From sequence record KJ019142.1: 64,000 nucleotides of DNA; one strand, given 5' to 3'. The notes beneath the pieces were generated by a model, which made no database searches, was not told where the DNA came from, and worked only from the letters and a program-made list of their open reading frames with translations. Shown here piece by piece: positions 32,560 to 53,025 of the stretch; position 1 is the first letter of the stretch, and every line of letters starts with the position of its first letter. The translations under genes and the position numbers were made by a program.

Positions 32560-32581
32560 ATACTCATACACACAAAGACCC

Positions 32582-35681: not shown

Positions 35682-35877
35682 AGAAGATCTAATGATCAAC
35701 TGGAAACAGAAGATGATGAAACATTGCACCCACGATTGGGAAAAGCAACTATTACGTGAAGGTGCCACATCATCTGTGACAGCAATGGGTATAATGTCAC
35801 TAAAGAAACGATACAAAAAGATTATGGGTATTGATGATGATCCAAAGCCACCTGTAGTTCAGTATGCTTCATATTGA
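35671..35877 (+). CDS. Hypothetical protein
   Basis: Stop lies in box 6. Confidence 0.55.
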   Translation: MMTEEDLMINWKQKMMKHCTHDWEKQLLREGATSSVTAMGIMSLKKRYKKIMGIDDDPKPPVVQYASY

Positions 35878-35931
35878 CACCTGAATAACTGGCACAAGGG
35901 GGGTAGGCACCCCCCTTTTTTGTGCCATAAT
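35873..35931 (+). promoter_or_regulatory. Cassette 6 (TAGGCA-16-CATAAT, hairpin)
   Basis: ATTGACACCTGAATAACTGGCACA. Confidence 0.8.
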
Positions 35932-35957
35932 ACAGAGGTAAACAACGGGAACCACCC

Positions 35958-36335
35958 ATGCAACTACCTACCCCCCTGCTAAACAGAGGTTACACTATAA
36001 ACGGCAATACTGCCAGTAGGGTATATCAGCACGGTTTTAGAGTAGAGTTAGAGGCACTAACTACCCTAAACATGCCCATAGGTTTACTAAACTATATTAT
36101 AAACGAAAACGATATAGAGTGCCCCTGGGCACCAGCAGATGTAGAGCAGTTTGATACTATCTGGCACTATACTGTTACAGATATTAGAGGTGAGATACTA
36201 GATAATACATATGGTTTTACAACCTATTATATGTTTGACTCTATTAGAGAGATACATAACGCACTAACAGATATTACAGTAGATAATGCGTTAGATATTA
36301 TGAATGGCACATCTGAACTATATGCCACCTGCTAA
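35958..36335 (+). CDS. Hypothetical early protein
   Basis: Sole gene between boxes 6 and 7. Confidence 0.65.
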   Translation: MQLPTPLLNRGYTINGNTASRVYQHGFRVELEALTTLNMPIGLLNYIINENDIECPWAPADVEQFDTIWHYTVTDIRGEILDNTYGFTTYYMFDSIREIHNALTDITVDNALDIMNGTSELYATC

Positions 36336-36380
36336 ACTGGCACAGGGGGGCTAGGCACAGCCCCCTACACCTGCTATACT
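36321..36380 (+). promoter_or_regulatory. Cassette 7 (TAGGCA-17-TATACT)
   Basis: TATGCCACCTGCTAAACTGGCACA. Confidence 0.8.
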
Positions 36381-36402
36381 AAACACATACCAAACCAATA
36401 CT

Positions 36403-37138: not shown

Positions 37139-37197
37139 TGTGACAGATGGGGAAGTGGCACACGCTTCCCCGCAAACCCCCTGAAACCTGTTATCTT
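37139..37197 (+). promoter_or_regulatory. Cassette 8 (CCCGCA-17-TATCTT)
   Basis: TGTGACAGATGGGGAAGTGGCACA. Confidence 0.8.
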
Positions 37198-37257
37198 ATA
37201 GGAGTGGGAGAGATACACCCCCCACACCAAACAAACCCCCTACAACCCCTTCTAAGT

Positions 37258-38305: not shown

Positions 38306-38365
38306 TGTGCCAGTTGGACTAGTGGCACAACCCCCCTAGGCAAGACCCCCCCTATCGTGTATTGT
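38306..38365 (+). promoter_or_regulatory. Cassette 9 (TAGGCA-17-TATTGT)
   Basis: TGTGCCAGTTGGACTAGTGGCACA. Confidence 0.85.
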
Positions 38366-38411
38366 ATAGAAGTGGAGGGGAAACCCACCACACAAACCAC
38401 TAACTAACCAA

Positions 38412-38594
38412 ATGAACCGCATCCAACTCAACAAAGAACTCACACAACTTCGCGAAGAACGTGAAAAAGCACAACGTGAAGTTGATAACATCCAAGGATG
38501 TATGAATGAGTTAATGAGGAAGCGAAATGAGTTGGATATGGAACAAGAAGAGCGTTCAGGTCAGATGTTATTCGACCAGATGTTCGGAGGTTGA
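38412..38594 (+). CDS. Small coiled-coil early protein
   Basis: Behind cassette 9; ends LFDQMFGG. Confidence 0.65.
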   Translation: MNRIQLNKELTQLREEREKAQREVDNIQGCMNELMRKRNELDMEQEERSGQMLFDQMFGG

Positions 38595-38623: not shown

Positions 38624-38869
38624 ATGAACACAACAACAATCAACATTCTCAAATCACTGGACATTCTTTCCACTTTGATTCAAGCATTCTATGAGATTGG
38701 ATATGAACTTGGCACCTTCTATCGCAACCATCTCCATTCACATGTGAAGTTTGCTATTGAATACTCTGGTCTCGTTATTCGTGAGACCTATAGTAACCGC
38801 CAAGAGTATTTCACAAAACTGAATAACCTTCGCAACCAAGCTGGTTCATACTTTGTCTATAGCGTGTGA
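38624..38869 (+). CDS. Hypothetical protein
   Basis: Stop TGA supplied by box 10. Confidence 0.6.
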   Translation: MNTTTINILKSLDILSTLIQAFYEIGYELGTFYRNHLHSHVKFAIEYSGLVIRETYSNRQEYFTKLNNLRNQAGSYFVYSV

Positions 38870-38924
38870 CAGTTGAGGAAGTGGCACAAGCCCCCTAGGC
38901 AAACCCCTCCTCACCTGCTATACT
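38865..38924 (+). promoter_or_regulatory. Cassette 10 (TAGGCA-17-TATACT)
   Basis: TGTGACAGTTGAGGAAGTGGCACA. Confidence 0.85.
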
Positions 38925-38949
38925 ATATTCATACCAAAGGGAACCACCC

Positions 38950-39192
38950 ATGACTCACCTTTCTTTCACTCAAACCACACAAAACGCACTCCGTGAGTTG
39001 GATCGTTTAGAGGGAATAAAAGTTAGACTCGCTGGTCTGATTGTTGATCTTAAAGAGACACCATCAGCTAACTCTGAGACTTGGGTCAGGATGTATACTG
39101 ACCGCCTCGTTTCTAATGTTATCCCAGCCATCAAGGAAGTTAAAGAATATCTCACTAGTCAGGATGCACTAGTTACCAAAGCATCCAACTGA
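38950..39192 (+). CDS. Hypothetical early protein
   Basis: Sole gene between boxes 10 and 11. Confidence 0.65.
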   Translation: MTHLSFTQTTQNALRELDRLEGIKVRLAGLIVDLKETPSANSETWVRMYTDRLVSNVIPAIKEVKEYLTSQDALVTKASN

Positions 39193-39240
39193 CAAACTGG
39201 CACAAGGGGGGTTGGCAAGACCCCTCAAAACCCCTATACT
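39181..39240 (+). promoter_or_regulatory. Cassette 11 (TTGGCA-17-TATACT, degenerate left arm)
   Basis: GCATCCAACTGACAAACTGGCACA. Confidence 0.8.
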
Positions 39241-39269
39241 AAACACATACCAAACAAAGGGAACAACCC

Positions 39270-39521
39270 ATGGCTCAACAAATCAAAATGAGAACACGAG
39301 TTTATTCTGATGTGACAGTAAGAGATCCACAGAGATATTATGATAGTGTGTTTCAGGGTTATAATGAGTATTGGACACTATTAGAATCAGATGATCCAAA
39401 GTGTATCTTAGTTGAGACTACAGCACAATATGATCTAAACCCAGGGGGTTTGGATAACTTATATGATATGATTACACCTGAAATGTATCAGTCAACATAC
39501 AGAACCTATATTGAAGTCTAA
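39270..39521 (+). CDS. Hypothetical early protein
   Basis: Sole gene between boxes 11 and 12. Confidence 0.65.
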   Translation: MAQQIKMRTRVYSDVTVRDPQRYYDSVFQGYNEYWTLLESDDPKCILVETTAQYDLNPGGLDNLYDMITPEMYQSTYRTYIEV

Positions 39522-39523
39522 GA

Positions 39524-39582
39524 TGTGACAGTTGGGGAAGTGGCACACGCTTCCCCACAAACCACTCCATACCTGCTATACT
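39524..39582 (+). promoter_or_regulatory. Cassette 12 (CCCACA-17-TATACT)
   Basis: TGTGACAGTTGGGGAAGTGGCACA. Confidence 0.85.
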
Positions 39583-39606
39583 AAACACATACCAAAGGAA
39601 ACCAAC

Positions 39607-39804
39607 ATGGTTATCGACACTGAAAACTATTTCACCACTGACAACGATCTTCTTCAGACAGTATCACAATTCATTCTCTCACTGAATAATAAATTGATCA
39701 GTCAGAATGCGAACTTTATGGAGTCTATTGGCGTTGATACTTTGACTGACTTCAACCAACAACTCATCCTTGAATGTGAAGAATACAAGTGTTATGATGT
39801 ATAA
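39607..39804 (+). CDS. Hypothetical early protein
   Basis: AAGGA RBS after cassette 12; start revised. Confidence 0.6.
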   Translation: MVIDTENYFTTDNDLLQTVSQFILSLNNKLISQNANFMESIGVDTLTDFNQQLILECEEYKCYDV

Positions 39805-39941
39805 TGAGATTACTTATTCTCTTCTTGTTTGTTACTGGGTTTCTAGTCCTTAGATTCGGAGTTGTCCCCCATGACAACTACGTATTCGATTGTGATAATA
39901 TCCCACAAACAACAATCAACACCATCGCCTGTGGTGGTTAA
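39804..39941 (+). CDS. Small membrane protein (absent from track)
   Basis: MRLLILFLFVTGFLVLRFGVVP... Confidence 0.45.
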   Translation: MRLLILFLFVTGFLVLRFGVVPHDNYVFDCDNIPQTTINTIACGG

Positions 39942-39964
39942 CACTCAACCTCAACTATTTCACC

Positions 39965-40474
39965 ATGACTGATACCAACAAGGCTCAAACAATTGAAGAG
40001 CTGAAAGCTGAAGTTTCTGAACTGAAGGCAGCTAGGAAGGAAGAACTTCTGGCACAGGCAGAACAACGAAAGCAAGATGAGGAACTTCGTTCACTCGAAC
40101 TTCAGAAACAAGCTCTAGAAAGTGGTTCCCTCCCCTCCCCCACAGGCACACCTCAGTCACTACAACGTAGGATGACTGATATTGAAAACGCACGAGTTCG
40201 CACCTGGGCATATGCACTAGGAGCCTATTTCACTGGTCCTATCATGCCAGCTGTGGTGGCTAATCGTACTAAGAATTGGACACCTTTCTGGGCTGGATTG
40301 GGTCTTGGCATTGTATCTCTCCCCCTAGCATTTGCTGACCTTGGTATCATCTCCTCTGTCCCTGCAGCTGCTTTAGGAACTGTACTTCAGGCTCAGAAAT
40401 CTAACAAGAAGCGTGAGGAGTTGGGTATTGTTTCCCCTGAGGAAGCTGACCTTCTCCGTTTCAAACAGTTCTGA
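39965..40474 (+). CDS. Coiled-coil plus membrane-hairpin hypothetical protein
   Basis: Charged helical N-half, hydrophobic C-half. Confidence 0.65.
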   Translation: MTDTNKAQTIEELKAEVSELKAARKEELLAQAEQRKQDEELRSLELQKQALESGSLPSPTGTPQSLQRRMTDIENARVRTWAYALGAYFTGPIMPAVVANRTKNWTPFWAGLGLGIVSLPLAFADLGIISSVPAAALGTVLQAQKSNKKREELGIVSPEEADLLRFKQF

Positions 40475-40571
40475 TTAAGTTACATCTCTGACCTCCTCAG
40501 TTTATACTGACGACTAAACCAACTGAGAGCGCTGGTCCCCTCTCACAACTCACCTTATCTAACTATCTACT

Positions 40572-41108
40572 ATGGCTATTTTCTCCGAAGAGTTCACCAA
40601 CAGCATCAAGTCTAAAGTTGATTCAGTGAAGGATAAATTCACAGGTATCAACATCGGGAAACAGAGTGTTGTTGCTATTGTGGGAGGTACGTTGGTATTC
40701 TCTACCCTCGCAGTTGGTGCAGTTGGTGCTACAGTTCGTCAGGTTGTTGGTTCTAACATGGCAAAACAATGTAATGTGGCTGTTGGTAACTATGTGGAGT
40801 TGGCTGAAGTTCAGGAAACCGAACTAGTGAGGGCTAATGGATATATTCAATCGGTTCTAGAAAACCCTTGGAGCGCCCTAGTCCTTGGTGCTAGGATGTC
40901 TGAGATGGCAGACGAGATGAGTGCTCGTTGGGATGAGATTGGTGAAGCTGATGATAACTATTTGGAGGCATGTGTTCCTGATAGTGACTTCAAACAATGG
41001 GTGTTTGGTGGATATGTTGAAGCCGATCGTGAAGCTAAGTGGGAAGCAGAATCTACCCTAGAAGATACTCGCCAAATCACAATCAAACTCTCTGAACAAC
41101 TCGGATGA
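40572..41108 (+). CDS. Hypothetical membrane-anchored protein
   Basis: TM segment VVAIVGGTLVFSTLAVGAVGA. Confidence 0.65.
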   Translation: MAIFSEEFTNSIKSKVDSVKDKFTGINIGKQSVVAIVGGTLVFSTLAVGAVGATVRQVVGSNMAKQCNVAVGNYVELAEVQETELVRANGYIQSVLENPWSALVLGARMSEMADEMSARWDEIGEADDNYLEACVPDSDFKQWVFGGYVEADREAKWEAESTLEDTRQITIKLSEQLG

Positions 41109-41356
41109 ACAACCCTTTCGCCTCACTAACTACCGAAGAGTTTATCTCTCTATCTGATGCATGTGCTCTCTCTGAACAAATGTGGAGGGAGCGCTCCCGT
41201 TCTATAAAAGCAGGGGAGCCACGTTGGTTTTTAGATGGCGAACCTATGTTCACTGAGGAGGAATGTCGTTCAGAGATGAAACGATATCGTGAGTTACAGA
41301 AACGAGTTTCCTGGTTCACTCTCACACCAGAGGAGGGGGAGGGTGTGCCAGTCTAA
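41105..41356 (+). CDS. Hypothetical protein
   Basis: ATGA overlap; ends in box 13. Confidence 0.55.
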   Translation: MNNPFASLTTEEFISLSDACALSEQMWRERSRSIKAGEPRWFLDGEPMFTEEECRSEMKRYRELQKRVSWFTLTPEEGEGVPV

Positions 41357-41403
41357 GAAGTGGCACAACCCCCCTAGACAAACCCCTCTTTTTCTGCTAT
41401 ACT
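41344..41403 (+). promoter_or_regulatory. Cassette 13 (TAGACA-17-TATACT)
   Basis: TGTGCCAGTCTAAGAAGTGGCACA. Confidence 0.85.
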
Positions 41404-41425
41404 ATTCACATACAGACAAAACACT

Positions 41426-42331
41426 ATGGCTAAGAATCTCCACCTAGAACACCCAGAAGACCAGCTCCTCACTGGTGATGATAGTGTCATCAGTTGGTTC
41501 TATGCAACCTCTAGTTCCTCTGTGAAGATGGATGGGGCTCCTGCTATTGTATGGGGAACTAACCCAGAAAATGGTGAGTTCTTTGTGGGAACTAAGTCAG
41601 TGTTTAATAAGAAGAAGATCAAGATATGTTATACCCAGAAAGATATTACAACCTTATATGGTCATCAACCTAATGTGGTTGCTATCCTTACCGCCTGTTT
41701 GGCATACCTCCCCCGCACTGATGTAGTGTATCAGGGTGACTTTATTGGGTTTGGTGGTGATGATACTTACACCCCAAATACTGTCACCTATGTGTTCCCT
41801 GAGGTTGTTGAGGAACGTGTTATCATGGCACCCCATACTTTCTATGTGGGTGAGAAGATGACTGAGATGGATGCCTTCCCTATCTTATCCACTCTAGATG
41901 AATCACGTCACGTTCACTTTGTTCAACCTACCGTGGATATCTACAACAATAAGGCAAACTGGGAAGAGTTTCAGCGTTGTTATGATGAAGTGAAAGAGGT
42001 AGATGGTTTCCTAGGTATCAAGAGAGCCACAGAGGCAAAGATTATCATCAACCAGTTACTCCGTAACAACAAGTATCTTAGTATTCCACTATTGACTGAG
42101 ATCTTTGGTACCAAAGAGATGGCTATTCTCTACACCTTCGCATTACATGAGAAGTTCAGAATCCTTGAGGATGCTATCTATTACGATGGTCCTCAGTGTT
42201 TGTTAGATGGTGATGATGTAGAGTCTGAGGGTATTGTTAGAACCAACCAGTTTGGTTCTATGAAACTCGTCAATCGTTACATCTTCAGTGTAGCAAACTT
42301 CAACAACAGTAAGTTCAGAGAGGTGAAGTAA
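41426..42331 (+). CDS. Ligase/nucleotidyltransferase-like protein (KxDG motif)
   Basis: HLEHPED, SVKMDGAPAIVWG, VYQGDF, EGIV...MKLVNR resemble ligase-superfamily motifs I, III, IV and V. Confidence 0.6.
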   Translation: MAKNLHLEHPEDQLLTGDDSVISWFYATSSSSVKMDGAPAIVWGTNPENGEFFVGTKSVFNKKKIKICYTQKDITTLYGHQPNVVAILTACLAYLPRTDVVYQGDFIGFGGDDTYTPNTVTYVFPEVVEERVIMAPHTFYVGEKMTEMDAFPILSTLDESRHVHFVQPTVDIYNNKANWEEFQRCYDEVKEVDGFLGIKRATEAKIIINQLLRNNKYLSIPLLTEIFGTKEMAILYTFALHEKFRILEDAIYYDGPQCLLDGDDVESEGIVRTNQFGSMKLVNRYIFSVANFNNSKFREVK

Positions 42332-42525
42332 TGGTTGACTTCGATACTCTAACCCACGAAGAACTAGAGAGACTATCTGATGACTGTGAAGACTTTCTTC
42401 TTCATAGAAATATACCTCTAAGGTCACATTCCTATGAGAATATCATCAGACATGCTATTTTGGAAGGATACCAACTATCTCGGTATCCTGGTGTGACACC
42501 TGGGAAACTGGCACAAGACCCCTAG
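42331..42525 (+). CDS. Hypothetical protein
   Basis: Runs through box 14. Confidence 0.55.
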   Translation: MVDFDTLTHEELERLSDDCEDFLLHRNIPLRSHSYENIIRHAILEGYQLSRYPGVTPGKLAQDP

Positions 42526-42551
42526 ACAAACCAGACCACACCTGCTATACT
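42492..42551 (+). promoter_or_regulatory. Cassette 14 (TAGACA-17-TATACT)
   Basis: TGTGACACCTGGGAAACTGGCACA. Confidence 0.85.
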
Positions 42552-42575
42552 ATACTCATACCAAACAAACAACCC

Positions 42576-42833
42576 ATGCAACTCACAGCACAACACGCAA
42601 ACATCGTTGTTGATTTCTACCCTGTCAAGTACTCTGATGGTACTATCAGTGAGCGTCTAATGTATAAAACAGTGAAGTTCGTTGGTTCACCTCCATCCAA
42701 GTCATATATCAACAAAGAATCATTTGAAAAGGAAGTTGATTCCCGTGTTTATGGTTTTGGTTATGAGGTGACTGCTCTACATACAGAGCCACAACTCTTC
42801 AACTCTGCACTTGTTCAAACTCGCTGGTCATAA
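42576..42833 (+). CDS. Hypothetical early protein
   Basis: First gene after cassette 14. Confidence 0.65.
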   Translation: MQLTAQHANIVVDFYPVKYSDGTISERLMYKTVKFVGSPPSKSYINKESFEKEVDSRVYGFGYEVTALHTEPQLFNSALVQTRWS

Positions 42834-42835
42834 GT

Positions 42836-43027
42836 ATGAATTACACACAACGGTTGTATGAGGCTGAACAACTCTCCACTATGTGTTACCTCCAGGATAT
42901 TGATCTAATGGATTGTATCATGGAGGTACGTGATTATCTAGAGTTGGGTTATAATGAAAGTAAAGATATTGCCTCAGGTACATATAAAGTTCTCTCATCA
43001 ATGAATCCCAATGAGCCTATCAAATGA
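42836..43027 (+). CDS. Hypothetical protein
   Basis: Operon context. Confidence 0.5.
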   Translation: MNYTQRLYEAEQLSTMCYLQDIDLMDCIMEVRDYLELGYNESKDIASGTYKVLSSMNPNEPIK

Positions 43028-43382
43028 ATCAATGAAGAAACTTGTGGAAAACGTTGGACCTGATGTTTTCCATCTAATTGCTTCTGACCCATACTATACT
43101 GAGACCTTTATGAACCTATTACCTGGTGCAATCACTGAGGTTATTGGTGACACTTCCCCTGAACTTATTGGTGCTTTGGGTATCAGTATCATGAACAGAA
43201 TTGAGTTTGTTGGTGACGATGATGGTGGTGATAATAAAGCCGCTAAAGTATGGGAGGAGAGATATAGATCTCTGTTTCGTTATGTCAAAAACACATACGC
43301 ATCAGAGTATGTTGATGGGGCAGAATATGGTCAGATGGGTACAATGTATGGAGATTTTACTAGTACCTCGGAGTTAGACTGA
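43011..43382 (+). CDS. Hypothetical protein
   Basis: Operon context. Confidence 0.55.
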   Translation: MSLSNESMKKLVENVGPDVFHLIASDPYYTETFMNLLPGAITEVIGDTSPELIGALGISIMNRIEFVGDDDGGDNKAAKVWEERYRSLFRYVKNTYASEYVDGAEYGQMGTMYGDFTSTSELD

Positions 43383-43585
43383 TGCCATCATTTACACCCT
43401 ATGGTAGATACCAACTAACATCAGTTCAGGTAGATTTGATCCTACACTGCATGAGTGAGTATAAAGGACTCACCACACAGGAAGATAACGAGAGGAGAAA
43501 GATTGTAGAAGAACTTAGCAACTCTTTTGCTGATACTGACCCATCAGATCCTTACCTAGATCATTACTATACTTGTGACTATTGA
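43382..43585 (+). CDS. Hypothetical protein
   Basis: TGATG coupling. Confidence 0.55.
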   Translation: MPSFTPYGRYQLTSVQVDLILHCMSEYKGLTTQEDNERRKIVEELSNSFADTDPSDPYLDHYYTCDY

Positions 43586-43959
43586 TGAATGAACTCTTTC
43601 CTTTTCCTGGTTTCCAGTATAGATTAGACTATACAGATAACGGAACCCCAAAGCTATGTTGGTTTGAATGTGAGGATCATTTAGCCAAACATATATCTAG
43701 ATACAAACTAACAAAGAAAACTCACAGGGCAAAGATCCAAACCCCTCGCGGTGTGAAGTTGGCGAAAGACCCGCTAGCCACCAAACCAGCCAGGAAACGG
43801 AAAACCACCCCCTCAAAACCCAGTGATACCAAGGGTTCTAAAGTATCAAAAACTACAAAATCCATAACGAAGGGCAAGAAGGTAGAAACACCCACCCCCT
43901 CCCGTAGGAAAGCGAAGAAATCAGTTTTTAGTACCGTGGAGGACTTCTTTACCAAATGA
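43582..43959 (+). CDS. Hypothetical protein with Lys-rich tail
   Basis: FPFPGFQYRL...CWFECEDHLAKHISRYKL, then a histone-like basic tail. Confidence 0.65.
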   Translation: MMNELFPFPGFQYRLDYTDNGTPKLCWFECEDHLAKHISRYKLTKKTHRAKIQTPRGVKLAKDPLATKPARKRKTTPSKPSDTKGSKVSKTTKSITKGKKVETPTPSRRKAKKSVFSTVEDFFTK

Positions 43960-44147
43960 TTGTACCTAACGAATCAGAATTGCTTCACCTAAAGATACAA
44001 GCAGCAATGAGGGAGAATGCTTTTCCTCACAATCAGTTGATGTATCTGGGTGAGAGAGAAGATCAACACTGGTATCTAATAGCAGGAAAACATGAAGTGC
44101 CGGTAACAATGTTAGAAGGATTTGAGAGGATTGATGATGAAGAATGA
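43956..44147 (+). CDS. Hypothetical protein
   Basis: LLHLKIQAAMRE...HWYLIAG. Confidence 0.6.
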   Translation: MIVPNESELLHLKIQAAMRENAFPHNQLMYLGEREDQHWYLIAGKHEVPVTMLEGFERIDDEE

Positions 44148-44289
44148 TAAACTAAAGACATATCACCTAAAGGTAAAGTTTATGGATGAACTAACCTATG
44201 GTCAGTTTATTACAGCACCCAGTGAAGAGGAAGCCATGAGACTTTTCATTGAGGAGTATATCTACATCGCATCGGAGAGAGACACATGA
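44137..44289 (+). CDS. Small hypothetical protein (absent from track)
   Basis: MKNDKLKTYHLKVKF...ITAPSEEEAMRLF fills the gap with overlaps at both ends. Confidence 0.5.
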   Translation: MKNDKLKTYHLKVKFMDELTYGQFITAPSEEEAMRLFIEEYIYIASERDT

Positions 44290-44477
44290 ACCACAATAAG
44301 GTAGCAGAGGCTCTTCATGAAGAAGTAACTGATTATATCTTTAAGAACCATTATCGCCATATCAAATCAGTTTATACTGATGTTGTTGAGGAATACATAG
44401 AGAGGGAAGTGGGTCCTCTAACTGAGAAGAACCACAAACAACTAGTTAAACAACTCGTTAAATTCTACATCTCCTGA
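44286..44477 (+). CDS. Hypothetical protein
   Basis: ATGA overlap. Confidence 0.55.
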   Translation: MNHNKVAEALHEEVTDYIFKNHYRHIKSVYTDVVEEYIEREVGPLTEKNHKQLVKQLVKFYIS

Positions 44478-44491
44478 TTGAGCTTTTCGTT

Positions 44492-44701
44492 ATGTCTTCA
44501 CCATCAGCATTCACACCAGCATTAGGTCTAGAAGTTGAATACAGGGGCTTTGTGGGTTATATCAAGTTTATAGATGAAGAATATTTAACAGTGTGTGTGA
44601 AGAAGAAAGAGCACCAAATGTTTGGTGATGTTTGTATGGTTGTGTATCCAAGTCAGTGGGAACACATTAAACTAATGGGCGGACCTCACAGAGACCGCTA
44701 G
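44492..44701 (+). CDS. Hypothetical protein
   Basis: VEYRGFVGYIKFIDEEYLTVCV; stop in box 15. Confidence 0.6.
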   Translation: MSSPSAFTPALGLEVEYRGFVGYIKFIDEEYLTVCVKKKEHQMFGDVCMVVYPSQWEHIKLMGGPHRDR

Positions 44702-44758
44702 GACAGTTGGAGAAGTGTCACAAGGGGGGTTCGCAACCCTCCTTTTTTATGCTATACT
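44699..44758 (+). promoter_or_regulatory. Cassette 15 (TTCGCA-17-TATACT, hairpin)
   Basis: TAGGACAGTTGGAGAAGTGTCACA. Confidence 0.85.
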
Positions 44759-44785
44759 ATATTCATACCAAAGGGAACCACCCCC

Positions 44786-44932
44786 ATGACTATCAACTTC
44801 AAAAGTCTATTCATCACCACTTGTGTGGGTCTCACCCTAATACTAGGGAGCTTCGCTTTTACCAGTGATTATGGTACTGAGACCGGGCGTGGCGAACAGA
44901 CTGAGAGCCCTTACTACGGACCCGCTTTCTAA
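44786..44932 (+). CDS. Small signal-anchored protein (absent from track)
   Basis: MTINFKSLFITTCVGLTLILGSFAF...; sole gene between boxes 15 and 16. Confidence 0.6.
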   Translation: MTINFKSLFITTCVGLTLILGSFAFTSDYGTETGRGEQTESPYYGPAF

Positions 44933-44977
44933 AGTGGCACAAGGGGGGTTGGCAAGACCCTCTACACCTGCTATACT
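44918..44977 (+). promoter_or_regulatory. Cassette 16 (TTGGCA-17-TATACT, right half-site only)
   Basis: ...CTAAAGTGGCACA-AGGGGGG-TTGGCA. Confidence 0.8.
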
Positions 44978-45000
44978 AAACACATACCAAACAAGGAACC

Positions 45001-45177
45001 ATGTTCAAACTTCAACTTAAGTGGCAGAAAGAAGGTGAGTGGATTGATACAGTATACGCTCCTACAGAATACGCAACAGCTTTCTTTCGTTGGAGACAGT
45101 ACCAAGAGCTTTGGGGTGATACTCACACCTATCGCCTCCTCGATGTGACACCTCAGGAAGTGGCACAAGCCTCCTAG
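45001..45177 (+). CDS. Small early protein (absent from track)
   Basis: MFKLQLKWQKEGEWIDTVY...; AAGGA RBS; sole gene between boxes 16 and 17. Confidence 0.6.
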   Translation: MFKLQLKWQKEGEWIDTVYAPTEYATAFFRWRQYQELWGDTHTYRLLDVTPQEVAQAS

Positions 45178-45203
45178 GCAAACCACCCCACACCTGCTAT
45201 ACT
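45144..45203 (+). promoter_or_regulatory. Cassette 17 (TAGGCA-17-TATACT)
   Basis: TGTGACACCTCAGGAAGTGGCACA. Confidence 0.85.
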
Positions 45204-45226
45204 AAACACATACCAAACAAAGAACC

Positions 45227-45508
45227 ATGAATTTCAAGTCCTTCCTTCTCTCCTCTCTCATCGTTACCACTGGGCTAGTAGCTTCAGCACCAGGAGCCAA
45301 AGCCGCTGAATGTTTCAATGGTGATGGATATCGGGTTTGTATGGAGAGCTTAGGCATGAATCGTTGGGAAGTATCCTTTGAGAACAATCACGGATCAGAG
45401 TTTATGGAGGTTCAGTGTATTGGCAAGAGTGTGAGTGATTGGACCTCACGGGGTGATTTGAGTCAGTCTGAAGCACAGTATCTCGCAGAGGAATTCTGTT
45501 CCTGGTAA
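45227..45508 (+). CDS. Exported 4-Cys protein (paralog of 48473)
   Basis: Signal MNFKSFLLSSLIVTTGLVASAPGAKA; four Cys. Confidence 0.7.
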   Translation: MNFKSFLLSSLIVTTGLVASAPGAKAAECFNGDGYRVCMESLGMNRWEVSFENNHGSEFMEVQCIGKSVSDWTSRGDLSQSEAQYLAEEFCSW

Positions 45509-45541
45509 GATACACCAACTAACCAACTCTACACTATTATC

Positions 45542-45697
45542 ATGTTTGTATCCTTCACTGAAATCCAAGACTACATTCGCGAAGATCAATACACATATAG
45601 TGAGCGCCAGTTCCGCTCACGCAAGTATAAAAAGAACGAACGTCGTTACCAACGTCGCCAGAAACAACAACAAAGAGACCGCACCTACGACGTGTGA
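45542..45697 (+). CDS. Small basic protein (absent from track)
   Basis: MFVSFTEIQDYIRED...RKYKKNERRYQRRQKQ; TGA supplied by box 18. Confidence 0.55.
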   Translation: MFVSFTEIQDYIREDQYTYSERQFRSRKYKKNERRYQRRQKQQQRDRTYDV

Positions 45698-45751
45698 CAG
45701 TTGGAGAAGTGGCACACGCTTCTCCGCAAACCCCTAAGGGGGTGCTATACT
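45693..45751 (+). promoter_or_regulatory. Cassette 18 (TCCGCA-17-TATACT)
   Basis: TGTGACAGTTGGAGAAGTGGCACA. Confidence 0.85.
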
Positions 45752-45776
45752 ATATTCATACCAAAGGGAACCACCC

Positions 45777-46001
45777 ATGACCACCACCACTCCAAACCTC
45801 TACAACGAAGCTATCCGTCGTTTGGCTGACGGGTTCTCCTCAGAGTTCGCTGAGTTCTGTGCAGGAGACGAGAGGGTTCACGAGATCATGATGGAACTCG
45901 CTAGTGAGTTCGTAGAAACTAATATCCCTGTAGTGAGTGAGGACAGCCAGACTGACGTGGCATCTGAGCTCCTCATGAGTATCACAGTCACCAAGGTGTG
46001 A
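45777..46001 (+). CDS. Small acidic early protein
   Basis: Sole gene between boxes 18 and 19; TGA supplied by box 19. Confidence 0.65.
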   Translation: MTTTTPNLYNEAIRRLADGFSSEFAEFCAGDERVHEIMMELASEFVETNIPVVSEDSQTDVASELLMSITVTKV

Positions 46002-46056
46002 CAGTCTAGGAACTGGCACAAGGGGGGTTGGCAACACCCCCCAAACCCCTTATAAT
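45997..46056 (+). promoter_or_regulatory. Cassette 19 (TTGGCA-17-TATAAT)
   Basis: TGTGACAGTCTAGGAACTGGCACA. Confidence 0.85.
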
Positions 46057-46081
46057 AAACACATACCAAACAACCCAGACC

Positions 46082-46630
46082 ATGAACTTCAAGAAACTCT
46101 TCCTTTCCGCCCTCGCACTTGGTTCAGTTGTAGCCCCTTCAGCAAACGCTGGTTATACCTATGAGGGTTATCACTTGATGGATGGTTCTGACTTTCCTGG
46201 TTATGAGAGAGTGGCAACCCCAATGATTCAGGCTCTCAATGAAATGGGTGTTCCTGTTGTTGATGGTGGTAAGAATAACGTAGAAATGTGTATTCCTGAA
46301 GAGGAAAAGATGACTCTTGGTTTCTACGTTCCAGCATCCAATGTGATGGTTATCTGTACCAAGTCTATCCCAGGTTGGCTCCAGATGGAGACACTTACCC
46401 ACGAAACAGTTCATGTCATCCAAGACGCACGGGCTGGTATTGATAACGGAGATTTGGGAGAGGCACCAACCGATCACCTTATCACCCTCGCTAATGAGAT
46501 GGATCCCGATAAGATGAATATCATCTACAGCCTCTACGATGAGTCTGATTACGCAGTAGAGATTGAAGCTTTCTACTTTGAAACAGAACCCCAGGTGGTT
46601 ATGAATGAGATCCAGAAGTGGGCATTCTGA
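46082..46630 (+). CDS. Exported zincin-like metallopeptidase (HExxH)
   Basis: Signal MNFKKLFLSALALGSVVAPSANA; TLTHETVHVIQD; downstream EIEA. Confidence 0.7.
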   Translation: MNFKKLFLSALALGSVVAPSANAGYTYEGYHLMDGSDFPGYERVATPMIQALNEMGVPVVDGGKNNVEMCIPEEEKMTLGFYVPASNVMVICTKSIPGWLQMETLTHETVHVIQDARAGIDNGDLGEAPTDHLITLANEMDPDKMNIIYSLYDESDYAVEIEAFYFETEPQVVMNEIQKWAF

Positions 46631-46672
46631 TACACTAAGTAACACTCACCAAACACACTAACTAACAACATC

Positions 46673-47059
46673 ATGGGCACACGTTCACGCATCGGTTATC
46701 AACTTCCAACTGGCAATATCGTTTCTGTGTATCATCATTGGGATTCCTATCCTACGTGGTTGGGTAAGAGACTCACCAAAAACTATATCACTGATAAAAC
46801 TATCACCGAACTGATTGATGGTGGTGATATGTCATCTATCGAGAGTAATCGCGACTGGGATCTTAATGAAGTTGCCCCACATGTTCAGTATTATTCACAA
46901 CGTGGTGACACTGGATGTGAACCCCTCCTTCACAAAAACCAAAGAGAGTTTATCAAAACCACTGTAGACTGTTGGGGTGAGTATTCCTACCTATACAGGA
47001 ATGGACGTTGGTTCTGTTATGATGAGAAGGGTAAGTCTGTTTCACTGAAGAACTTATGA
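46673..47059 (+). CDS. Conserved phage hypothetical protein
   Basis: GTRSRIG...SVYHHWDSYPTWLG...LIDGGDMS...EYSYLY. Confidence 0.7.
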   Translation: MGTRSRIGYQLPTGNIVSVYHHWDSYPTWLGKRLTKNYITDKTITELIDGGDMSSIESNRDWDLNEVAPHVQYYSQRGDTGCEPLLHKNQREFIKTTVDCWGEYSYLYRNGRWFCYDEKGKSVSLKNL

Positions 47060-47391
47060 TTAGCAAACTGTTTTCACTATCTGTTGTTCTTGCGGGTTCT
47101 ATCTTACCCGCACAGGCATACCCCAATATCGTATATTGGGAACGCATTGATTGTAACCTCATCACCGAAACTATCCAGAAGTGTGATAGGTACAATGGGC
47201 AGAATGGAGTTTTCATCGAATCATACTACCTGGACATATACACAAACGAACATAGCTTTATAGATCCACGAGGACCTGAAATAGTTGTACCTGATGTAAT
47301 AGAAGAAGAGACACTAGATGATATCCAACCTGATGTAGAATACAACGAACCGATAACAACAACAGACCCACTCCTGAATGATAGTTACTGA
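47056..47391 (+). CDS. Hypothetical exported protein
   Basis: MISKLFSLSVVLAGSILPAQA signal. Confidence 0.6.
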   Translation: MISKLFSLSVVLAGSILPAQAYPNIVYWERIDCNLITETIQKCDRYNGQNGVFIESYYLDIYTNEHSFIDPRGPEIVVPDVIEEETLDDIQPDVEYNEPITTTDPLLNDSY

Positions 47392-47539
47392 TTTTTCCAT
47401 ATTCCTGTCGGCAACCACCTCCTACCATACCCCCTGCCAAACCGATATGGTTTTTTCACCTTTCCCGTCTAGTGGCTCACTGGTGTCTCAGCGAGGCACA
47501 AATGAGATTTCACCCCCATACCACCCCTCTGACCAAAAC
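47392..47539. repeat. Second repeat family, copy B
   Basis: See copy A. Confidence 0.8.
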
Positions 47540-47544
47540 GGATC

Positions 47545-47856
47545 ATGAAACGCTACGGACTTTATTGGCTGAGAGCTATCACCCTGGGAGCTGGTTTGAA
47601 CTTTGTTTTGACTGGTTACCTTATGGGTCACCAAAAGTGGAAGTTTCAACATGCAGCTCCACTCTCAGCGTTTATCTGTGTGAATCTATCGTATGTGGCG
47701 GATCGTCTTATCTTTGGTGATAAGAAGGAACCTGAAGATTTAGATCCAGATACTATTGTTATATCAACCCCACACTGTTGCCCCGTATGTTCAGAGTATC
47801 CTTGCACTTGTGACAGTTGGGAAAGTGGCACAACCCCCCTAGGCAACACCCTCTGA
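47545..47856 (+). CDS. Hypothetical membrane protein
   Basis: Two hydrophobic helices, CCPVC...PCTC; runs through box 20. Confidence 0.5.
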   Translation: MKRYGLYWLRAITLGAGLNFVLTGYLMGHQKWKFQHAAPLSAFICVNLSYVADRLIFGDKKEPEDLDPDTIVISTPHCCPVCSEYPCTCDSWESGTTPLGNTL

Positions 47857-47868
47857 ACCTGCTATACT
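47809..47868 (+). promoter_or_regulatory. Cassette 20 (TAGGCA-17-TATACT)
   Basis: TGTGACAGTTGGGAAAGTGGCACA. Confidence 0.85.
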
Positions 47869-47892
47869 AAACACATACCAAAGGAACCAACC

Positions 47893-48090
47893 ATGAAAGT
47901 CTCTCAGGAAGTTTTCAAGAGTTACATTCAGATACTGGATGAAAACACACAAACATCATGGGATATCCTAAATGTTTTGAATGATATTGTTAGAGGTGAC
48001 TGGGATAACTCAGTCCAGTATTGTTTGGAAAATCCATCAGGCGACCCTATGGATGATTTCAACTACGCAGGCAGTCGCCACCACTATTGA
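47893..48090 (+). CDS. Hypothetical early protein
   Basis: AAGGA RBS after cassette 20. Confidence 0.65.
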   Translation: MKVSQEVFKSYIQILDENTQTSWDILNVLNDIVRGDWDNSVQYCLENPSGDPMDDFNYAGSRHHY

Positions 48091-48119
48091 TCACTAACTC
48101 ACCACACCAACTAACAACT

Positions 48120-48404
48120 ATGACACGCACTCCAATCACAGTTACCCTCAAGCGTAGCGAATGGGAATGTTATACAGACACTCCTGATACTATCATCGAA
48201 ACCATCAACACATACTTCTCTTATGTGTTATCAACTAAAGATAACGCATTTGATGCACAAGCTGAGATATTTAAGTTTCTGAATATGTTTAGTGAGTTTG
48301 GGTTTATGGATAGTGAGTGCCTAGAATGTGCAACTAGAGTTATCAATCGTTACTTTGATTCATATCTTTCCCGCTGGAGTCAGGTGGGTGATGTGACAGT
48401 CTAG
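48120..48404 (+). CDS. Hypothetical protein
   Basis: Start revised to ATG 48120; ends in box 21. Confidence 0.6.
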   Translation: MTRTPITVTLKRSEWECYTDTPDTIIETINTYFSYVLSTKDNAFDAQAEIFKFLNMFSEFGFMDSECLECATRVINRYFDSYLSRWSQVGDVTV

Positions 48405-48450
48405 GAACTGGCACACGCTTCTCCGCAAACCCCTCAGGGGGTGCTATACT
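48392..48450 (+). promoter_or_regulatory. Cassette 21 (TCCGCA-17-TATACT)
   Basis: TGTGACAGTCTAGGAACTGGCACA. Confidence 0.85.
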
Positions 48451-48472
48451 ATATTCATACCAAAGGAACCAA

Positions 48473-48790
48473 ATGAATTTCAGAACACTAGCACTCACCA
48501 CCACCCTGGCTCTCTCCACTGTCCTAGGTGGTTTGGCTCCTGAAGCTAAGTCAGCTGACTTTTGTGACAACATCCCCGGCAACTCGGGATACGTTTGTGT
48601 TACCATGGGTCTCTGGTTCGACTTGGTTGAGGCAGACATACCCGCCTTTGGTGGTAAAGAGTCATTACACATCACCTGTGACGGTGGCTGGTCCTACCGT
48701 TCGAATGGCAACTGGAACAAAGACGCCGCTTCCCTTGTGGCTAAGGAGTACTGTGAAGGTGCTGGCTGGAACAGCCACTCCGAGGTGTGA
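48473..48790 (+). CDS. Exported 4-Cys protein (paralog of 45227)
   Basis: Signal MNFRTLALTTTLALSTVLGGLAPEAKS; TGA supplied by box 22. Confidence 0.7.
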   Translation: MNFRTLALTTTLALSTVLGGLAPEAKSADFCDNIPGNSGYVCVTMGLWFDLVEADIPAFGGKESLHITCDGGWSYRSNGNWNKDAASLVAKEYCEGAGWNSHSEV

Positions 48791-48844
48791 CAGTTGAGGA
48801 AGTGGCACACGCTTCCCCCAAAACCCCTCAGGGGGTGCTATACT
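48786..48844 (+). promoter_or_regulatory. Cassette 22 (weak -35, TATACT)
   Basis: TGTGACAGTTGAGGAAGTGGCACA. Confidence 0.8.
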
Positions 48845-48869
48845 ATATTCATACCAAACAAGGAAACCA

Positions 48870-49136
48870 ATGTTCCCACACCTCCACATCTCTGAATCAA
48901 ACCTCGGACCTCACACCTCCATGTTTTTCAAAGTATCATCACAACCACAAGATGAGTGGCAGAATGGCATTTTCCATAACTCACCTTATGGTATCTTCCA
49001 CCTTCATTCTGAGAAAGGTGTTTATAAGTTGGAACTATCTTCCTCAGGTTTGAATACACCTAAGTTCAGAAAGTGTAAGTGTGAAGATGAACTTACCGCA
49101 CTCACTAAGATTCGTCAGTGGATGGATAAGTTCTGA
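48870..49136 (+). CDS. Hypothetical early protein
   Basis: WQNGIFHNSPY...PKFRKCK. Confidence 0.65.
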   Translation: MFPHLHISESNLGPHTSMFFKVSSQPQDEWQNGIFHNSPYGIFHLHSEKGVYKLELSSSGLNTPKFRKCKCEDELTALTKIRQWMDKF

Positions 49137-49171
49137 TATTATCTAACACAAACCACTCACAACAAACTATC

Positions 49172-49345
49172 ATGAACCGACTAGAACTACTGACCCAACG
49201 TGAACAACTGATGGAGAGGATTGACTCTATCTGTGATGAATTCTTTTATAAGAACTATAATGGAGATACGTCAGAAGCAGATGAATTAGTTCGTATTCTA
49301 TGTGATGCTGTTTGTGAAACCATAGACCCAGCGGGTATGGTGTGA
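49172..49345 (+). CDS. Small hypothetical protein (absent from track)
   Basis: MNRLELLTQREQLMERID...ILCDAVCETID; TGA supplied by box 23. Confidence 0.6.
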   Translation: MNRLELLTQREQLMERIDSICDEFFYKNYNGDTSEADELVRILCDAVCETIDPAGMV

Positions 49346-49399
49346 CAGTTGGACTAGTGGCACACGCTTCTCCGCAAACCCCTCCTCACCTGCTATACT
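49341..49399 (+). promoter_or_regulatory. Cassette 23 (TCCGCA-17-TATACT)
   Basis: TGTGACAGTTGGACTAGTGGCACA. Confidence 0.85.
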
Positions 49400-49424
49400 A
49401 TATTCATACCAAAGGAAACCGACC

Positions 49425-49688
49425 ATGTTCCAAGTCTGTATTGAAGATTCACTAGATCACCGTCATACAGTTGATGAGTTTGAGACTCTGGAAGAAGCAC
49501 AAGAGTGTTATAACGAGTGTTTGAAGATTGGTCCTGAGGGTTATGAACTCTCTGTTGAGTTAGAGCAAGTTATTGGCGACCATGATGATTATATTTCAAT
49601 TGATTTCACCGAGTGGTTTACACAAGAGGAGTGGGATGTGGCTCATCCATGGAATGAGAAGGAAGGAGTATGGGAAAACATAGACTGA
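49425..49688 (+). CDS. Very acidic early protein
   Basis: Sole gene between boxes 23 and 24; Glu/Asp-rich. Confidence 0.65.
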   Translation: MFQVCIEDSLDHRHTVDEFETLEEAQECYNECLKIGPEGYELSVELEQVIGDHDDYISIDFTEWFTQEEWDVAHPWNEKEGVWENID

Positions 49689-49747
49689 TGTGACAGTTGG
49701 AGAAGTGGCACACGCTTCTCCGCAAGACCCGCCTCACCTGCTATACT
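49689..49747 (+). promoter_or_regulatory. Cassette 24 (TCCGCA-17-TATACT)
   Basis: TGTGACAGTTGGAGAAGTGGCACA. Confidence 0.85.
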
Positions 49748-49774
49748 ATTCACATACCAAACAAAGGAAACCAA

Positions 49775-50116: not shown

Positions 50117-50176
50117 TGTGACAGCCACCAAGGTGGCACAGGGGGGCTAGGCAGCTCCCCTTCTTTATGCTATACT
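50117..50176 (+). promoter_or_regulatory. Cassette 25 (TAGGCA-17-TATACT, hairpin) upstream of the helicase
   Basis: TGTGACAGCCACCAAGGTGGCACA. Confidence 0.85.
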
Positions 50177-50198
50177 ATATTCATACCAAAGGAACCCG

Positions 50199-52682: not shown

Positions 52683-52741
52683 TGTGCCAATTCCCAAACT
52701 GGCACACGGAAACCCCAAAACCCCTCCCAGTACCCTATACT
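52683..52741 (+). promoter_or_regulatory. Cassette 26 (weak -35, TATACT)
   Basis: TGTGCCAATTCCCAAACTGGCACA. Confidence 0.8.
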
Positions 52742-52769
52742 ATATTCATACAAACAAAGGGAACACCCC

Positions 52770-52975: not shown

Positions 52976-53025
52976 ATAGAGGTAGGGGGGGAAACCACTC
53001 TACACTCACTCTAAACTCTCTAAAC

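Follow-up and report, generated by a model that had tools for sequence, protein, structure and literature searches.

Cassettes between the tail-fibre genes and gp25

The window analysed here, a 64,000-nucleotide stretch of record KJ019142.1, belongs to the marine Synechococcus phage ACG-2014f isolate Syn7803C11, a T4-like member of the Kyanoviridae. Between its tail-fibre genes and gp25 lies a hyperplastic region in which small accessory genes alternate with 29 copies of a short cassette, all on the + strand (Table 1). The array runs from 27212 to 55611, well beyond the limits of 38865-49747 given by a sequence-only reading of the window; neither 1-27 kb nor 56-64 kb contains a cassette. Nearly all real intergenic gaps of the region are occupied by a cassette, and the median spacer is 79 nt with a cassette versus 1 nt without. 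The distance from box to ATG is 80-86 nt in most copies (extremes 53-118 nt, partial copies counted).

A 23-nt box opens each cassette; a -35 block and an extended -10 (TGCTATACT) follow, and a CA-rich leader then runs to the ATG with which the next gene starts. The box, GTGACAGT-N7-AGTGGCACA, has a GC content of about 50%, and the gene upstream usually has its stop codon within it; the box pattern is matched 21 times, versus 0.03 expected. A -35/N17/-10 arrangement with TG is present in most copies, and the cassettes probably act as promoters, perhaps early in infection. The -35 blocks fall into three types. In T1 the -35 lies in the loop of a G-run/C-run hairpin that is followed in many copies by a T run; this combination resembles an intrinsic terminator and may function as one. 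The T2 block, found in a third of copies, is C-rich and unstructured, while the T3 block, CGCTTCYCC, pairs with the loop of the box. Folding is significant for T1 and matched T3 copies (z = -3 to -3.7) and not for T2 copies.

Table 1. Cassettes and leader repeats of the window. No., number of the copy in the sequence-only reading; z, folding score.
Position	Strand	No.	Description	Promoter motifs, score
27212..27302	+		T1: box and G6/C5 hairpin, TTGGCG in loop, T run; ATG 27303	-10 TATAAT 27264-27269; z=-3.2
30088..30171	+		T1-like; box TGA is upstream CDS stop	-10 TATACT 30140-30145
31192..31272	+		Divergent; TTGACG box	-35 TTGACA, -10 TACAGT
31949..32001	+		Partial: hairpin/promoter part alone, no box	E=8e-4
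32501..32581	+		T1, terminator-like hairpin and T run	-10 CATAAT; z=-3.0
32699..32780	+		T2, AGCCCCCTAGGCAA block	-10 TATACT
35874..35957	+		T1; left edge of slot with four different gene sets in relatives	
36322..36402	+		T1-like; right edge of the 35874 slot	
37140..37257	+		T3 (CGCTTCCCCGCAA; complementary loop GGGGAAG), long leader; T2 block in L008/L131 orthologue	
38307..38411	+	9	T2, GTGCCAGT box, long CA-rich leader	
38375..38415	+		CA-rich translation leader; 41-nt repeat	
38866..38949	+	10	T2; left partner, KJ019148 2.4-kb deletion	
39182..39269	+		T1, shortened box (AACTGACAAACTGGCACA)	
39525..39606	+		T3; cassette, 168-nt gene and cassette in L007-9/L131	z=-3.65
41345..41425	+		T2, GTGCCAGT box; right partner, KJ019148 2.4-kb deletion	
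42493..42575	+		T2, GTGACACC box	
44700..44785	+		T1; chimera of two cassettes around 606-nt gene of KJ019151	
44919..45000	+		T1, box is 3' half alone (AAGTGGCACA)	
45145..45226	+		T2, GTGACACC box	
45694..45776	+	18	T3; CTTCTCC pairs with loop GGAGAAG	z=-3.05
45998..46081	+	19	T1	-10 TATAAT
47810..47892	+		T2, no predicted structure	z=+2.4
48088..48131	+		CA-rich leader; 44-nt repeat	
48393..48472	+	21	T3 mosaic: 45998 box, 45694 remainder; left border of slot with three alternative genes	
48787..48869	+	22	T3 mosaic: 38866 box; right border of the 48393 slot	
49342..49424	+	23	T3 three-way mosaic: 38307-like box, 45694-like -35 block, 42 nt of 38866	
49690..49774	+	24	T3	
50118..50198	+		T1, ahead of ResIII/DEAD helicase gene	
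52684..52769	+		Divergent; cassette, 234-nt gene and cassette in relatives	
52917..53025	+		Divergent; left breakpoint of deletion in four relatives	-35 TTGACC, -10 TATAAT
55550..55611	+		Partial (hairpin/promoter part); left breakpoint of one-gene deletion in six relatives	

Mosaic copies and recombinant junctions

The sequence-only reading had described the cassettes as mosaics of one another, and every identity that it listed is exact. The box of the 48393 cassette shows 0/23 differences from that of 45998 and five from that of 45694; its next 50 nt differ from the 45694 copy at one site (max-chi-square P = 5e-5, the lowest value that 20,000 permutations allow). The 48787 copy shares its box with 38866, and its downstream part has 4-5 differences from 48393 and 45694 (P = 0.003). 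The 49690 box equals that of 45694. In the 49342 copy (P about 3e-4), the box differs by 1 nt from that of 38307, and positions 49376-49415 are identical to 38901-38940, an identity that extends to 42 nt (38899-38940 and 49374-49415). Such triplets support the named mosaics at P = 5e-5 to 5e-3, values that are uncorrected for multiple testing and belong to triplets picked after seeing the data. Among 22 aligned copies, a PHI-type test gives 0.65, versus 1.075 in permuted data, with 0/5000 permutations as low. Distances in four segments of the cassette show almost no correlation (Mantel r = 0.03-0.21; only adjacent segments reach significance).

Comparison with 10 sister genomes reveals 22 differences in gene content, with 44 breakpoints. 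As the earlier reading would predict, breakpoints are enriched at cassettes: 25/44 lie within 12 nt of one, versus 10.5% expected (P = 6e-14, uniform null; P = 0.0017, gene-junction null), although the P values are somewhat generous because breakpoints were scored against cassettes of either genome and the null reflects coverage of the window only. Both ends lie in cassettes in 10/22 events (P = 8e-5 against the gene-junction null); for at least one end there is no enrichment over random gene junctions (P = 0.19). A cassette is missing at one or both ends of 12/22 events, and in 7/22, about a third, both breakpoints are more than 12 nt away from any cassette. Among the events outside cassettes are two HNH-gene insertions (38132 and 49127), a microhomology deletion (39946-40486) and events at CA-rich leader repeats. 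These repeats, which carry no promoter, form a second kind of recombining junction: five relatives carry two copies of the 41-nt repeat around an extra gene of ~180 nt, and KJ019101/KJ019148 carry two copies of the 44-nt repeat around an extra 222-nt gene.

Where a cassette-gene-cassette unit faces a single cassette, the alignments overlap by 74-84 nt. At several events the single cassette is a chimera of the relatives' two, so that the crossover can be read directly. The 49690 cassette combines the 5' part of the left and the 3' part of the right cassette that flank a 237-nt gene in KJ019101/KJ019148, with the crossover (versus KJ019101) inside a 45-nt identity. The 44700 copy has the left box and the right -35/-10 of the KJ019151 pair. 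In KJ019148, loss of 7 genes has left one cassette composed of 38866 at its 5' side and 41345 at its 3' side, joined within about 10 nt of shared sequence. The mapped crossovers vary in position, lying at the 3' end of the box, in the -35 block, in the spacer and -10, or in the leader.

Orthologous cassettes diverge by 3.2%, versus 2.0% in their flanks, and display block replacements between identical flanks. Half of the tracts of clustered differences (10/20) are identical to a paralogous cassette; no sampled donor was found for the other half. The identity of patches to paralogous copies indicates gene conversion.

Recombination between cassettes

These observations support the proposal that, without an integrase, crossovers and gene conversion between cassettes remove, add and swap the genes that lie between them. 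Breakpoints, chimeras and patches bear out the excision, insertion and replacement envisaged in the sequence-only reading. Its suggestion of reordering is not borne out: no gene translocation was seen, and no copy of a gene inserted in relatives is present at another place in the window. The idea that no integrase is involved agrees with the GenBank annotation of 24-58 kb, which lists no recombinase or integrase, and with a Pfam scan of 10 larger proteins of 28-57 kb, which found none.

Most probably, the repeats are regulatory cassettes of the promoter-early stem-loop (PeSL) type, recombined by the phage's own homologous recombination machinery. About 29 direct repeats with identities of 10-45 nt would allow this machinery to pair non-allelic copies. 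The enzymes proposed are UvsX/UvsY, gp46/47 and gp32, which are standard in T4-like cyanophages; one study found uvsX and uvsY in every one of the 16 cyanomyoviruses that it compared (PMC3037559). A single crossover between two copies would delete the intervening genes, presumably as a circle, and a single chimeric cassette would remain. Genes would be inserted or replaced in a cassette-bounded slot by the reverse reaction or through exchange between genomes that infect the same cell, and short conversion patches may carry box loops, -35 blocks and leaders from copy to copy, generating the mosaic pattern.

It is unlikely that the cassettes are passive bystanders that merely fill gaps while gene gain and loss stem from illegitimate recombination, from homing endonucleases and from exchange of alleles in flanking genes. 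HNH-gene insertions and a microhomology deletion do occur, one-ended enrichment is lost against the gene-junction null, and at the slot 35880-36335 the relatives lack a cassette at the left border. Against this, the enrichment for both ends survives the same null, 74-84 nt of cassette homology are duplicated on either side of inserted genes, and the recombinant cassettes are clean chimeras of two parental copies.

Less probable still is a site-specific, truly integron-like process in which a dedicated recombinase or structure-specific nuclease would target the box and cut and join DNA at module boundaries. No part of the cassette is more conserved than the box, an imperfect inverted repeat whose distance from the -35 is fixed; further cyanomyovirus lineages also carry it (S-RIM50/S-RIM8, S-CAM7 and an S-SRM01-like contig). 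For some indels the start coincides exactly with that of the box (35880 and, in relatives, the 47539 insertion), and variable HNH nuclease genes are present in the region. The spread of crossovers along the cassette is, however, expected for homologous rather than site-specific recombination, and resembles that in RB49/phi1 (PMC2839356). The promoter-less leader repeats behave alike, the box arms show no covariation supporting a folded structure, and the annotation and protein scan noted above provide no recombinase.

Duplication and divergence alone, with tandem duplications and with blocks shared through constraint or convergence, is already contradicted and most improbable. The cassettes are clearly constrained in length and in the -10, have just three types of -35 block and show weak correlation between adjacent segments, but blocks of up to 42 nt are common to copies that differ strongly elsewhere, the PHI-type and triplet tests are positive, whole blocks that match paralogous copies distinguish orthologous cassettes between identical flanks, and chimeric cassettes mark real deletions. 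Moreover, no paralogues occur among the 84 flanking proteins, so the cassettes did not arise by duplication of gene-plus-cassette units. Equally hard to credit are short-read mis-joins or collapse at 80-nt repeats as the origin of mosaics and indels: nine events seen in one isolate only, such as the KJ019085 95-nt tandem duplication at the 47810 cassette and the KJ019148 2.4-kb deletion, could be assembly errors, but 13/22 recur in 2-6 independently assembled isolates, the window's mosaics recur without a base change in KJ019111, KJ019091 and KJ019085, and every cassette is bordered on either side, within about 100 nt, by unique sequence.

Relation to integrons and PeSL cassettes

Repeated intergenic sequences that double as promoters are also described in the halovirus HF2; this is an archaeal virus whose promoters are AT-rich and unrelated to the cyanophage cassettes (PMC8707807).

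The term integron-like, used in the sequence-only reading, holds only as a functional analogy. As in integrons (attC x attI, IntI), the modules of the array share one orientation, mostly hold a single gene and have imperfect inverted-repeat elements at their borders; close relatives differ in which modules they carry, and excision would yield a circle with one hybrid site. The annotation and proteins examined contain no tyrosine recombinase, however, and the array has no attI platform; every module has its own promoter whereas integron modules share one Pc, and recombination points occur at more than one site. The cyanophage repeats (23-85 nt) are conserved in sequence, attC in structure.

The closest parallel is provided by the PeSL cassettes of RB49/phi1 (Arbiol et al. 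2010, PMC2839356), for which the PeSL model, mini-circles and chimeric PeSLs were shown experimentally; Comeau et al. 2014 (PMC4122927) carried the model over to PST/T4 and nt-1/KVP40. A study that discusses PeSLs in a cyanophage found no dense array in S-PM2 (PMC4503421), and no report of such an array in cyanophages was found in the literature. The two kinds of cassette differ in several respects. There is no detectable sequence similarity, and BLAST matches of a cyanophage cassette are to Synechococcus phages only. A conserved box of about 50% GC takes the place of the AT-rich region upstream in PeSLs. The -35 lies inside the hairpin loop in T1 copies but downstream of the hairpin in PeSLs, and the -10 is of the extended form. 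Because the third of copies with T2 blocks has no stem-loop, not every unit possesses the "terminator" half of a PeSL. Both are nevertheless short same-orientation units (stem-loop, sigma70-type -35/N17/-10, leader, ATG) between small open reading frames of hyperplastic regions, both are located at the breakpoints of indels and replacements that distinguish close relatives, and in both a single chimeric cassette remains at recombinant sites, with crossovers spread along the unit. Recombination of the cyanophage cassettes is the known PeSL mechanism, an idea already published for other T4-like phages (PMC2839356, PMC4122927).

Predicted promoter cassettes of the hyperplastic region

The window is identical to record KJ019142.1 (Kyanoviridae, Atlauavirus), with the same coordinates, and the phage collection contains about 45 ACG-2014f genomes that match it at 95–100% identity and differ from it in gene content. 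Between gp25 (57080) and the tail-fibre genes, which end at 27203, lies its hyperplastic region of about 85 small genes; most have a hypothetical annotation, and nearly all are on the + strand. The box pattern of the cassettes has 21 matches, with 0.03 expected. With a profile of the aligned copies, 29 cassettes are detected, all of them + strand and inside 27212–55611, while the parts of the window with structural genes have none; the mosaic phenomenon thus extends past the stretch in which the sequence-only reading had described it. An annotated ATG ends all 29, at 80–86 nt from the box in most. The median spacer at gene junctions is 79 nt with a cassette and 1 nt without, so that cassettes are essentially the sole intergenic DNA of the region. 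Family matches among the proteins of the region are to DUF6267 (E = 9e-75) and a 2OG-Fe(II) oxygenase domain (E = 5e-14), with a weak, sub-threshold metallopeptidase-like match.

Coordinates of features in and around the cassette array (L005, L006, L007 and L130 are the corresponding regions of sister genomes)
Feature	Window	Relative	Detail
Proteins with family matches or a weak hit	41426–42331, 28181–28753, 46082–46630		
ResIII/DEAD helicase gene	50199		within the hyperplastic region
Second small hairpin, T3 cassettes	45736–45747, 48435–48446, 48829–48840		CCCCU(A/C)AGGGGG
Cassette–gene–cassette in relatives, single cassette in window	39525, 44700, 49690, 52684		34–84 nt of duplicated homology
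Slot between c48393 and c48787	48472–48782		three unrelated genes across isolates
Slot, cassette-bounded	35880–36335	L007 9912–13853; L006 9881–13455	four different contents; 125-aa ORF in window
95-nt tandem duplication	47836–47930	L005 (KJ019085) 23840–23990	
Extra 85-nt cassette	41101–41110	L007 (KJ019059) 19127–19211	two window genes overlap here (ATGA)
HNH-endonuclease gene insertions	38132, 49127	L130 (KJ019148) 11685–12152; L007 (KJ019059) 27724–28119	sites differ between isolates
'cox1-i7' ORF	51561–52271 (–)		711 nt
'Two-component sensor histidine kinase' gene	39965–40474		
Single-gene indels at leader repeats	38375–38415, 48088–48131		41–44-nt CA-rich repeats

Each cassette (named here by its starting position, as in c48393) is built from a 23-nt box, GTGACAGT-N7-AGTGGCACA, followed by a −35 block, a spacer, an extended −10 that is usually TGCTATACT, a CA-rich leader and an ATG; AAGGA or AGGGA is present in the leaders. 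A sigma70-like promoter (−35, about 17 nt, −10) is predicted from this sequence, with a core of TAGGCA, TTGGCA or TAGACA, N17, and TATACT or TATAAT, and with TG mostly upstream of the −10. By analogy, the cassettes would be active promoters with early timing. A generic promoter scan is uninformative as enrichment (38 matches, 32 expected); 12 cassette promoters are among its matches.

Three types of −35 block occur. In T1 (10 copies) a G run and a C run form a hairpin whose loop contains TTGGCA or TAGGCA (z about −3), and the T run that follows in many copies likens the element to an intrinsic terminator. T2 (10 copies), with the block A(G/C)CCCCCTAGGCAA, does not fold significantly (z between 0 and +2.4). 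T3, with the block CGCTTCYCCGCAA, is found in 7 copies, of which five adjoin one another at 45.7–49.7 kb; it has a weak −35 (TCCGCA) and retains the extended −10; its CTTCYCC pairs with GGRGAAG of the box loop to give a hairpin of 9–10 bp (z = −3 to −3.7 in copies with a matched loop). Across 11 genomes the two T3 halves are perfectly complementary in 9 of 17 distinct cases, compared with 5.2 by shuffling (P = 0.016), and both covarying states are found among them. The pairing of loop and block is broken in the mosaic T3 copies c48393 and c49342, whose folding is no better than that of shuffled sequence. Between −35 and −10, a second small hairpin occurs in three T3 cassettes; the other T3 copies have CCTCACC in its place. 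No Rfam family matches the window.

A hairpin, in RNA or DNA, was rejected as a general feature of the box itself, because, of 56 distinct boxes, 42 have A·G at pair 4–19 and 43 have bases that do not pair at 7–16. The arms are conserved in sequence, with no covariation. Positions 7 and 16 favor identity (G–G 27 times, C–C 11 times) over complementarity (13 of 56; window and regions L002–L009, L130 and L131 of sister genomes), the opposite of what a hairpin predicts. The upstream reading frame stops inside the box in 16 of 27 cases, seven of them at the TGA of GTGA (for example, boxes 38866–38888 and 45694–45716); five more frames stop no more than 12 nt upstream of the box, and two reach the TAG of the −35 hexamer TAGACA or TAGGCA. 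A gene joined upstream of a cassette would therefore soon be terminated.

Units of box and promoter are also present in S-RIM50/S-RIM8, in S-CAM7 and in an S-SRM01-like contig; a scan of the collection with the bare box pattern gave 120 matches, mostly chance singles, with real cassettes at only four loci. Since the box is conserved in sequence and not in pairing, keeps a fixed distance to the −35 and recurs in other cyanomyoviruses, it is conceivable, if rather doubtful, that it is a dedicated cis-element across these viruses: a putative binding site for a host or phage factor at about −43 to −65 of early promoters, and also a module boundary that closes the upstream frame by its stops. If so, modular architecture and recombinability would be built around a specific regulatory protein–DNA interaction. 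The conservation of the box means that a putative binding partner can be sought.

Mosaic cassettes and gene-content differences

The identities between copies that the sequence-only reading had listed are all exact. The box of c48393 is that of c45998, and its next 50 nt differ from c45694 at one site; the box of c48787 is that of c38866, and the box of c49690 is that of c45694. The box of c49342 differs by one base from that of c38307, and further along the same cassette 49376–49415 repeats 38901–38940, in an identity run that reaches 42 nt. Over 22 aligned copies, compatibility is much higher between neighboring informative sites than between distant ones (PHI-type statistic 0.65, versus 1.075 under permutation; 0 of 5000 as low). 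Maximum chi-square gives P = 5e-5 (the permutation floor) for c48393, about 3e-4 for c49342, a three-way mosaic, and 0.003 for c48787, all for triplets picked post hoc and with P uncorrected. Independent assortment of the segments, as had been proposed, is borne out by nearly uncorrelated distances among box loop, −35 block, spacer and leader (Mantel r = 0.03–0.21), significant for adjacent segments only.

Tandem duplication as shown by paralogous genes was rejected: the 84 proteins of the region contain no paralogues beyond one weak pair, and the similarity of the cassettes is thus not the residue of duplicated units of gene and cassette.

BLAST alignments of the region from 10 relatives, chained against the window, define 22 distinct insertion, deletion or replacement events. 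The expectation that breakpoints in close relatives would fall at cassettes is confirmed: 25 of 44 lie within 12 nt of a cassette, against 10.5% under a uniform expectation (P = 6e-14) and 34% under a gene-junction null (29 of 85 junctions have a cassette; P = 0.0017), and both ends lie in cassettes in 10 of 22 events (P = 8e-5 against the junction null), all P values being somewhat generous because cassettes were counted in either of the two genomes. In 15 of 22 events one end or both lie in a cassette, which is no enrichment over the junction null (P = 0.19).

At four positions a single window cassette corresponds to cassette–gene–cassette in relatives, and two slots between cassettes hold different genes in different isolates (table). 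Exactly the seven genes (2.4 kb) enclosed by c38866 and c41345 are missing from KJ019148. The slot that has a 125-aa ORF in the window is occupied in some relatives by 3.6–3.9 kb with an annotated DNA methyltransferase and a second helicase, which could be defense or counter-defense cargo.

A cassette can also be gained or lost alone, since a complete 85-nt copy is present in three relatives at a site where two window genes overlap; this extra copy is 4–7 nt different from the c44700 orthologues. KJ019085 has a tandem duplication of 95 nt that runs from the −35 block of c47810 into the next gene, of which it takes in the first 40 nt or so; found in one isolate only, it could reflect slippage or an assembly error.

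Several of the single cassettes are chimeras of the pair found in the other genome. The sequence of c49690 follows the left cassette of KJ019101 as far as a stretch of 45 nt that the two cassettes have in common, and beyond it follows the right one; c44700 joins the box of the left cassette of KJ019151 to the −35 and −10 of the right one; and the single cassette of KJ019148 switches from c38866 to c41345 at TAGGCAAACCCCTC. The exchange point varies from case to case (3′ end of the box, −35 block, or spacer and −10), as homologous recombination predicts and as in the mini-circles of phages RB49 and phi1 (PMC2839356).

Orthologous cassettes diverge by 3.2%, compared with 2.0% in their 240-nt flanks, and the differences lie in blocks between identical flanks. 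In KJ019059, c44700 has 12 differences in 80 nt and its flanks one; c37140 has a T3 block in the window and a T2 block in KJ019101 and KJ019053; and c49342 has GGACTAG with T3 in the window and GGAGAAG with T2 in KJ019059. For half of the tracts of clustered differences (10 of 20), an identical sequence stands in a paralogous cassette whose flanks are different. A stricter search for donors of whole tracts found an identical paralogue for none of 12 long tracts; the informative search was that by cluster.

Recombination and other sources of variability

The best-supported mechanism is homologous recombination, together with short-patch conversion, between dispersed direct repeats that would double as promoter, and partly terminator, units. 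Breakpoints, chimeric cassettes and conversion patches together uphold excision, insertion and exchange of genes by recombination at the repeats, of which the earlier proposal had named the first two. The reordering that it also included is not shown, for the inserted genes of relatives have no second copy elsewhere in the window; gene translocation was likewise rejected, as inserted segments match the window at cassettes only. Replication of the T4 type is recombination-dependent. The genes uvsX and uvsY are present in T4-like cyanophages (PMC3037559), and phage recombination enzymes would be the machinery that acts on the cassettes. Circular excision products may be formed, by analogy.

Some events are not explained by cassettes. 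HNH-endonuclease genes are inserted in KJ019148 and KJ019059, and homing-type elements may be a second source of variability. An ORF annotated 'cox1-i7' has a sub-threshold NUMOD1 match (19.2 bits, cut-off 22.8) and is shortened to 522 nt in KJ019101 and KJ019148. In KJ019151 a 5-nt microhomology marks the precise deletion of the annotated histidine kinase gene, for which Pfam gives no match at E ≤ 0.01. CA-rich leader repeats that have neither box nor promoter flank two single-gene indels; they form a second class of short recombining junction, in which another repeat acts on the same principle.

T4-like cyanophages are among the most abundant viruses of the ocean, and their hyperplastic regions contain most of their unknown and host-adaptive genes, whose gain and loss are poorly documented. 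This locus and some 45 near-identical wild isolates provide a population-scale natural demonstration of short promoter cassettes as recombination substrates. They predict cassette-bounded slots where new genes should appear, and they yield predicted promoter sequences that could serve in cyanophage or Synechococcus genetics.

Relation to integrons and PeSLs

The array had been likened to an integron without an integrase. Indeed, no integrase (IntI) or other recombinase is found in the GenBank annotation of 24–58 kb or among 10 proteins scanned against Pfam. There is also no attI, each module has its own promoter, and crossovers occur at several positions of the cassette and not at a fixed point; the array is therefore not an integron. 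Unlike attC sites, the box arms keep their sequence and do not covary.

A closer parallel is the promoter-early stem-loop (PeSL) cassette of the T4-like phages RB49/phi1, T4/PST and KVP40/nt-1 (PMC2839356, PMC4122927), which the array matches in architecture and behavior. No dense PeSL array was found in the cyanophage S-PM2 (PMC4503421), and the paper that released the ACG-2014f genomes (PMC5112629) makes no mention of promoters or PeSLs. There are differences. The cassettes have no sequence similarity to the elements of those phages; the box, which is not AT-rich, replaces the AT-rich region of PeSLs upstream of the −35; the −35 lies inside the hairpin loop in T1; and the stem-loop is absent from one third of copies, significant hairpins being predicted for T1 and matched T3 but not for the ten T2 or the mosaic T3 copies. 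As in PeSLs, each unit has a predicted sigma70-like early promoter and, at its end, a ribosome-binding leader followed by the next gene's start codon, the cassettes are concentrated between small non-core ORFs of a hyperplastic region (27.2–55.6 kb), and they stand where close relatives differ by insertion, deletion or replacement, with chimeric units left behind. The cassette array is a clear natural-population example of a PeSL-type system, and with it the reach of the PeSL model widens from enterobacterial and vibrio phages to include cyanophages.
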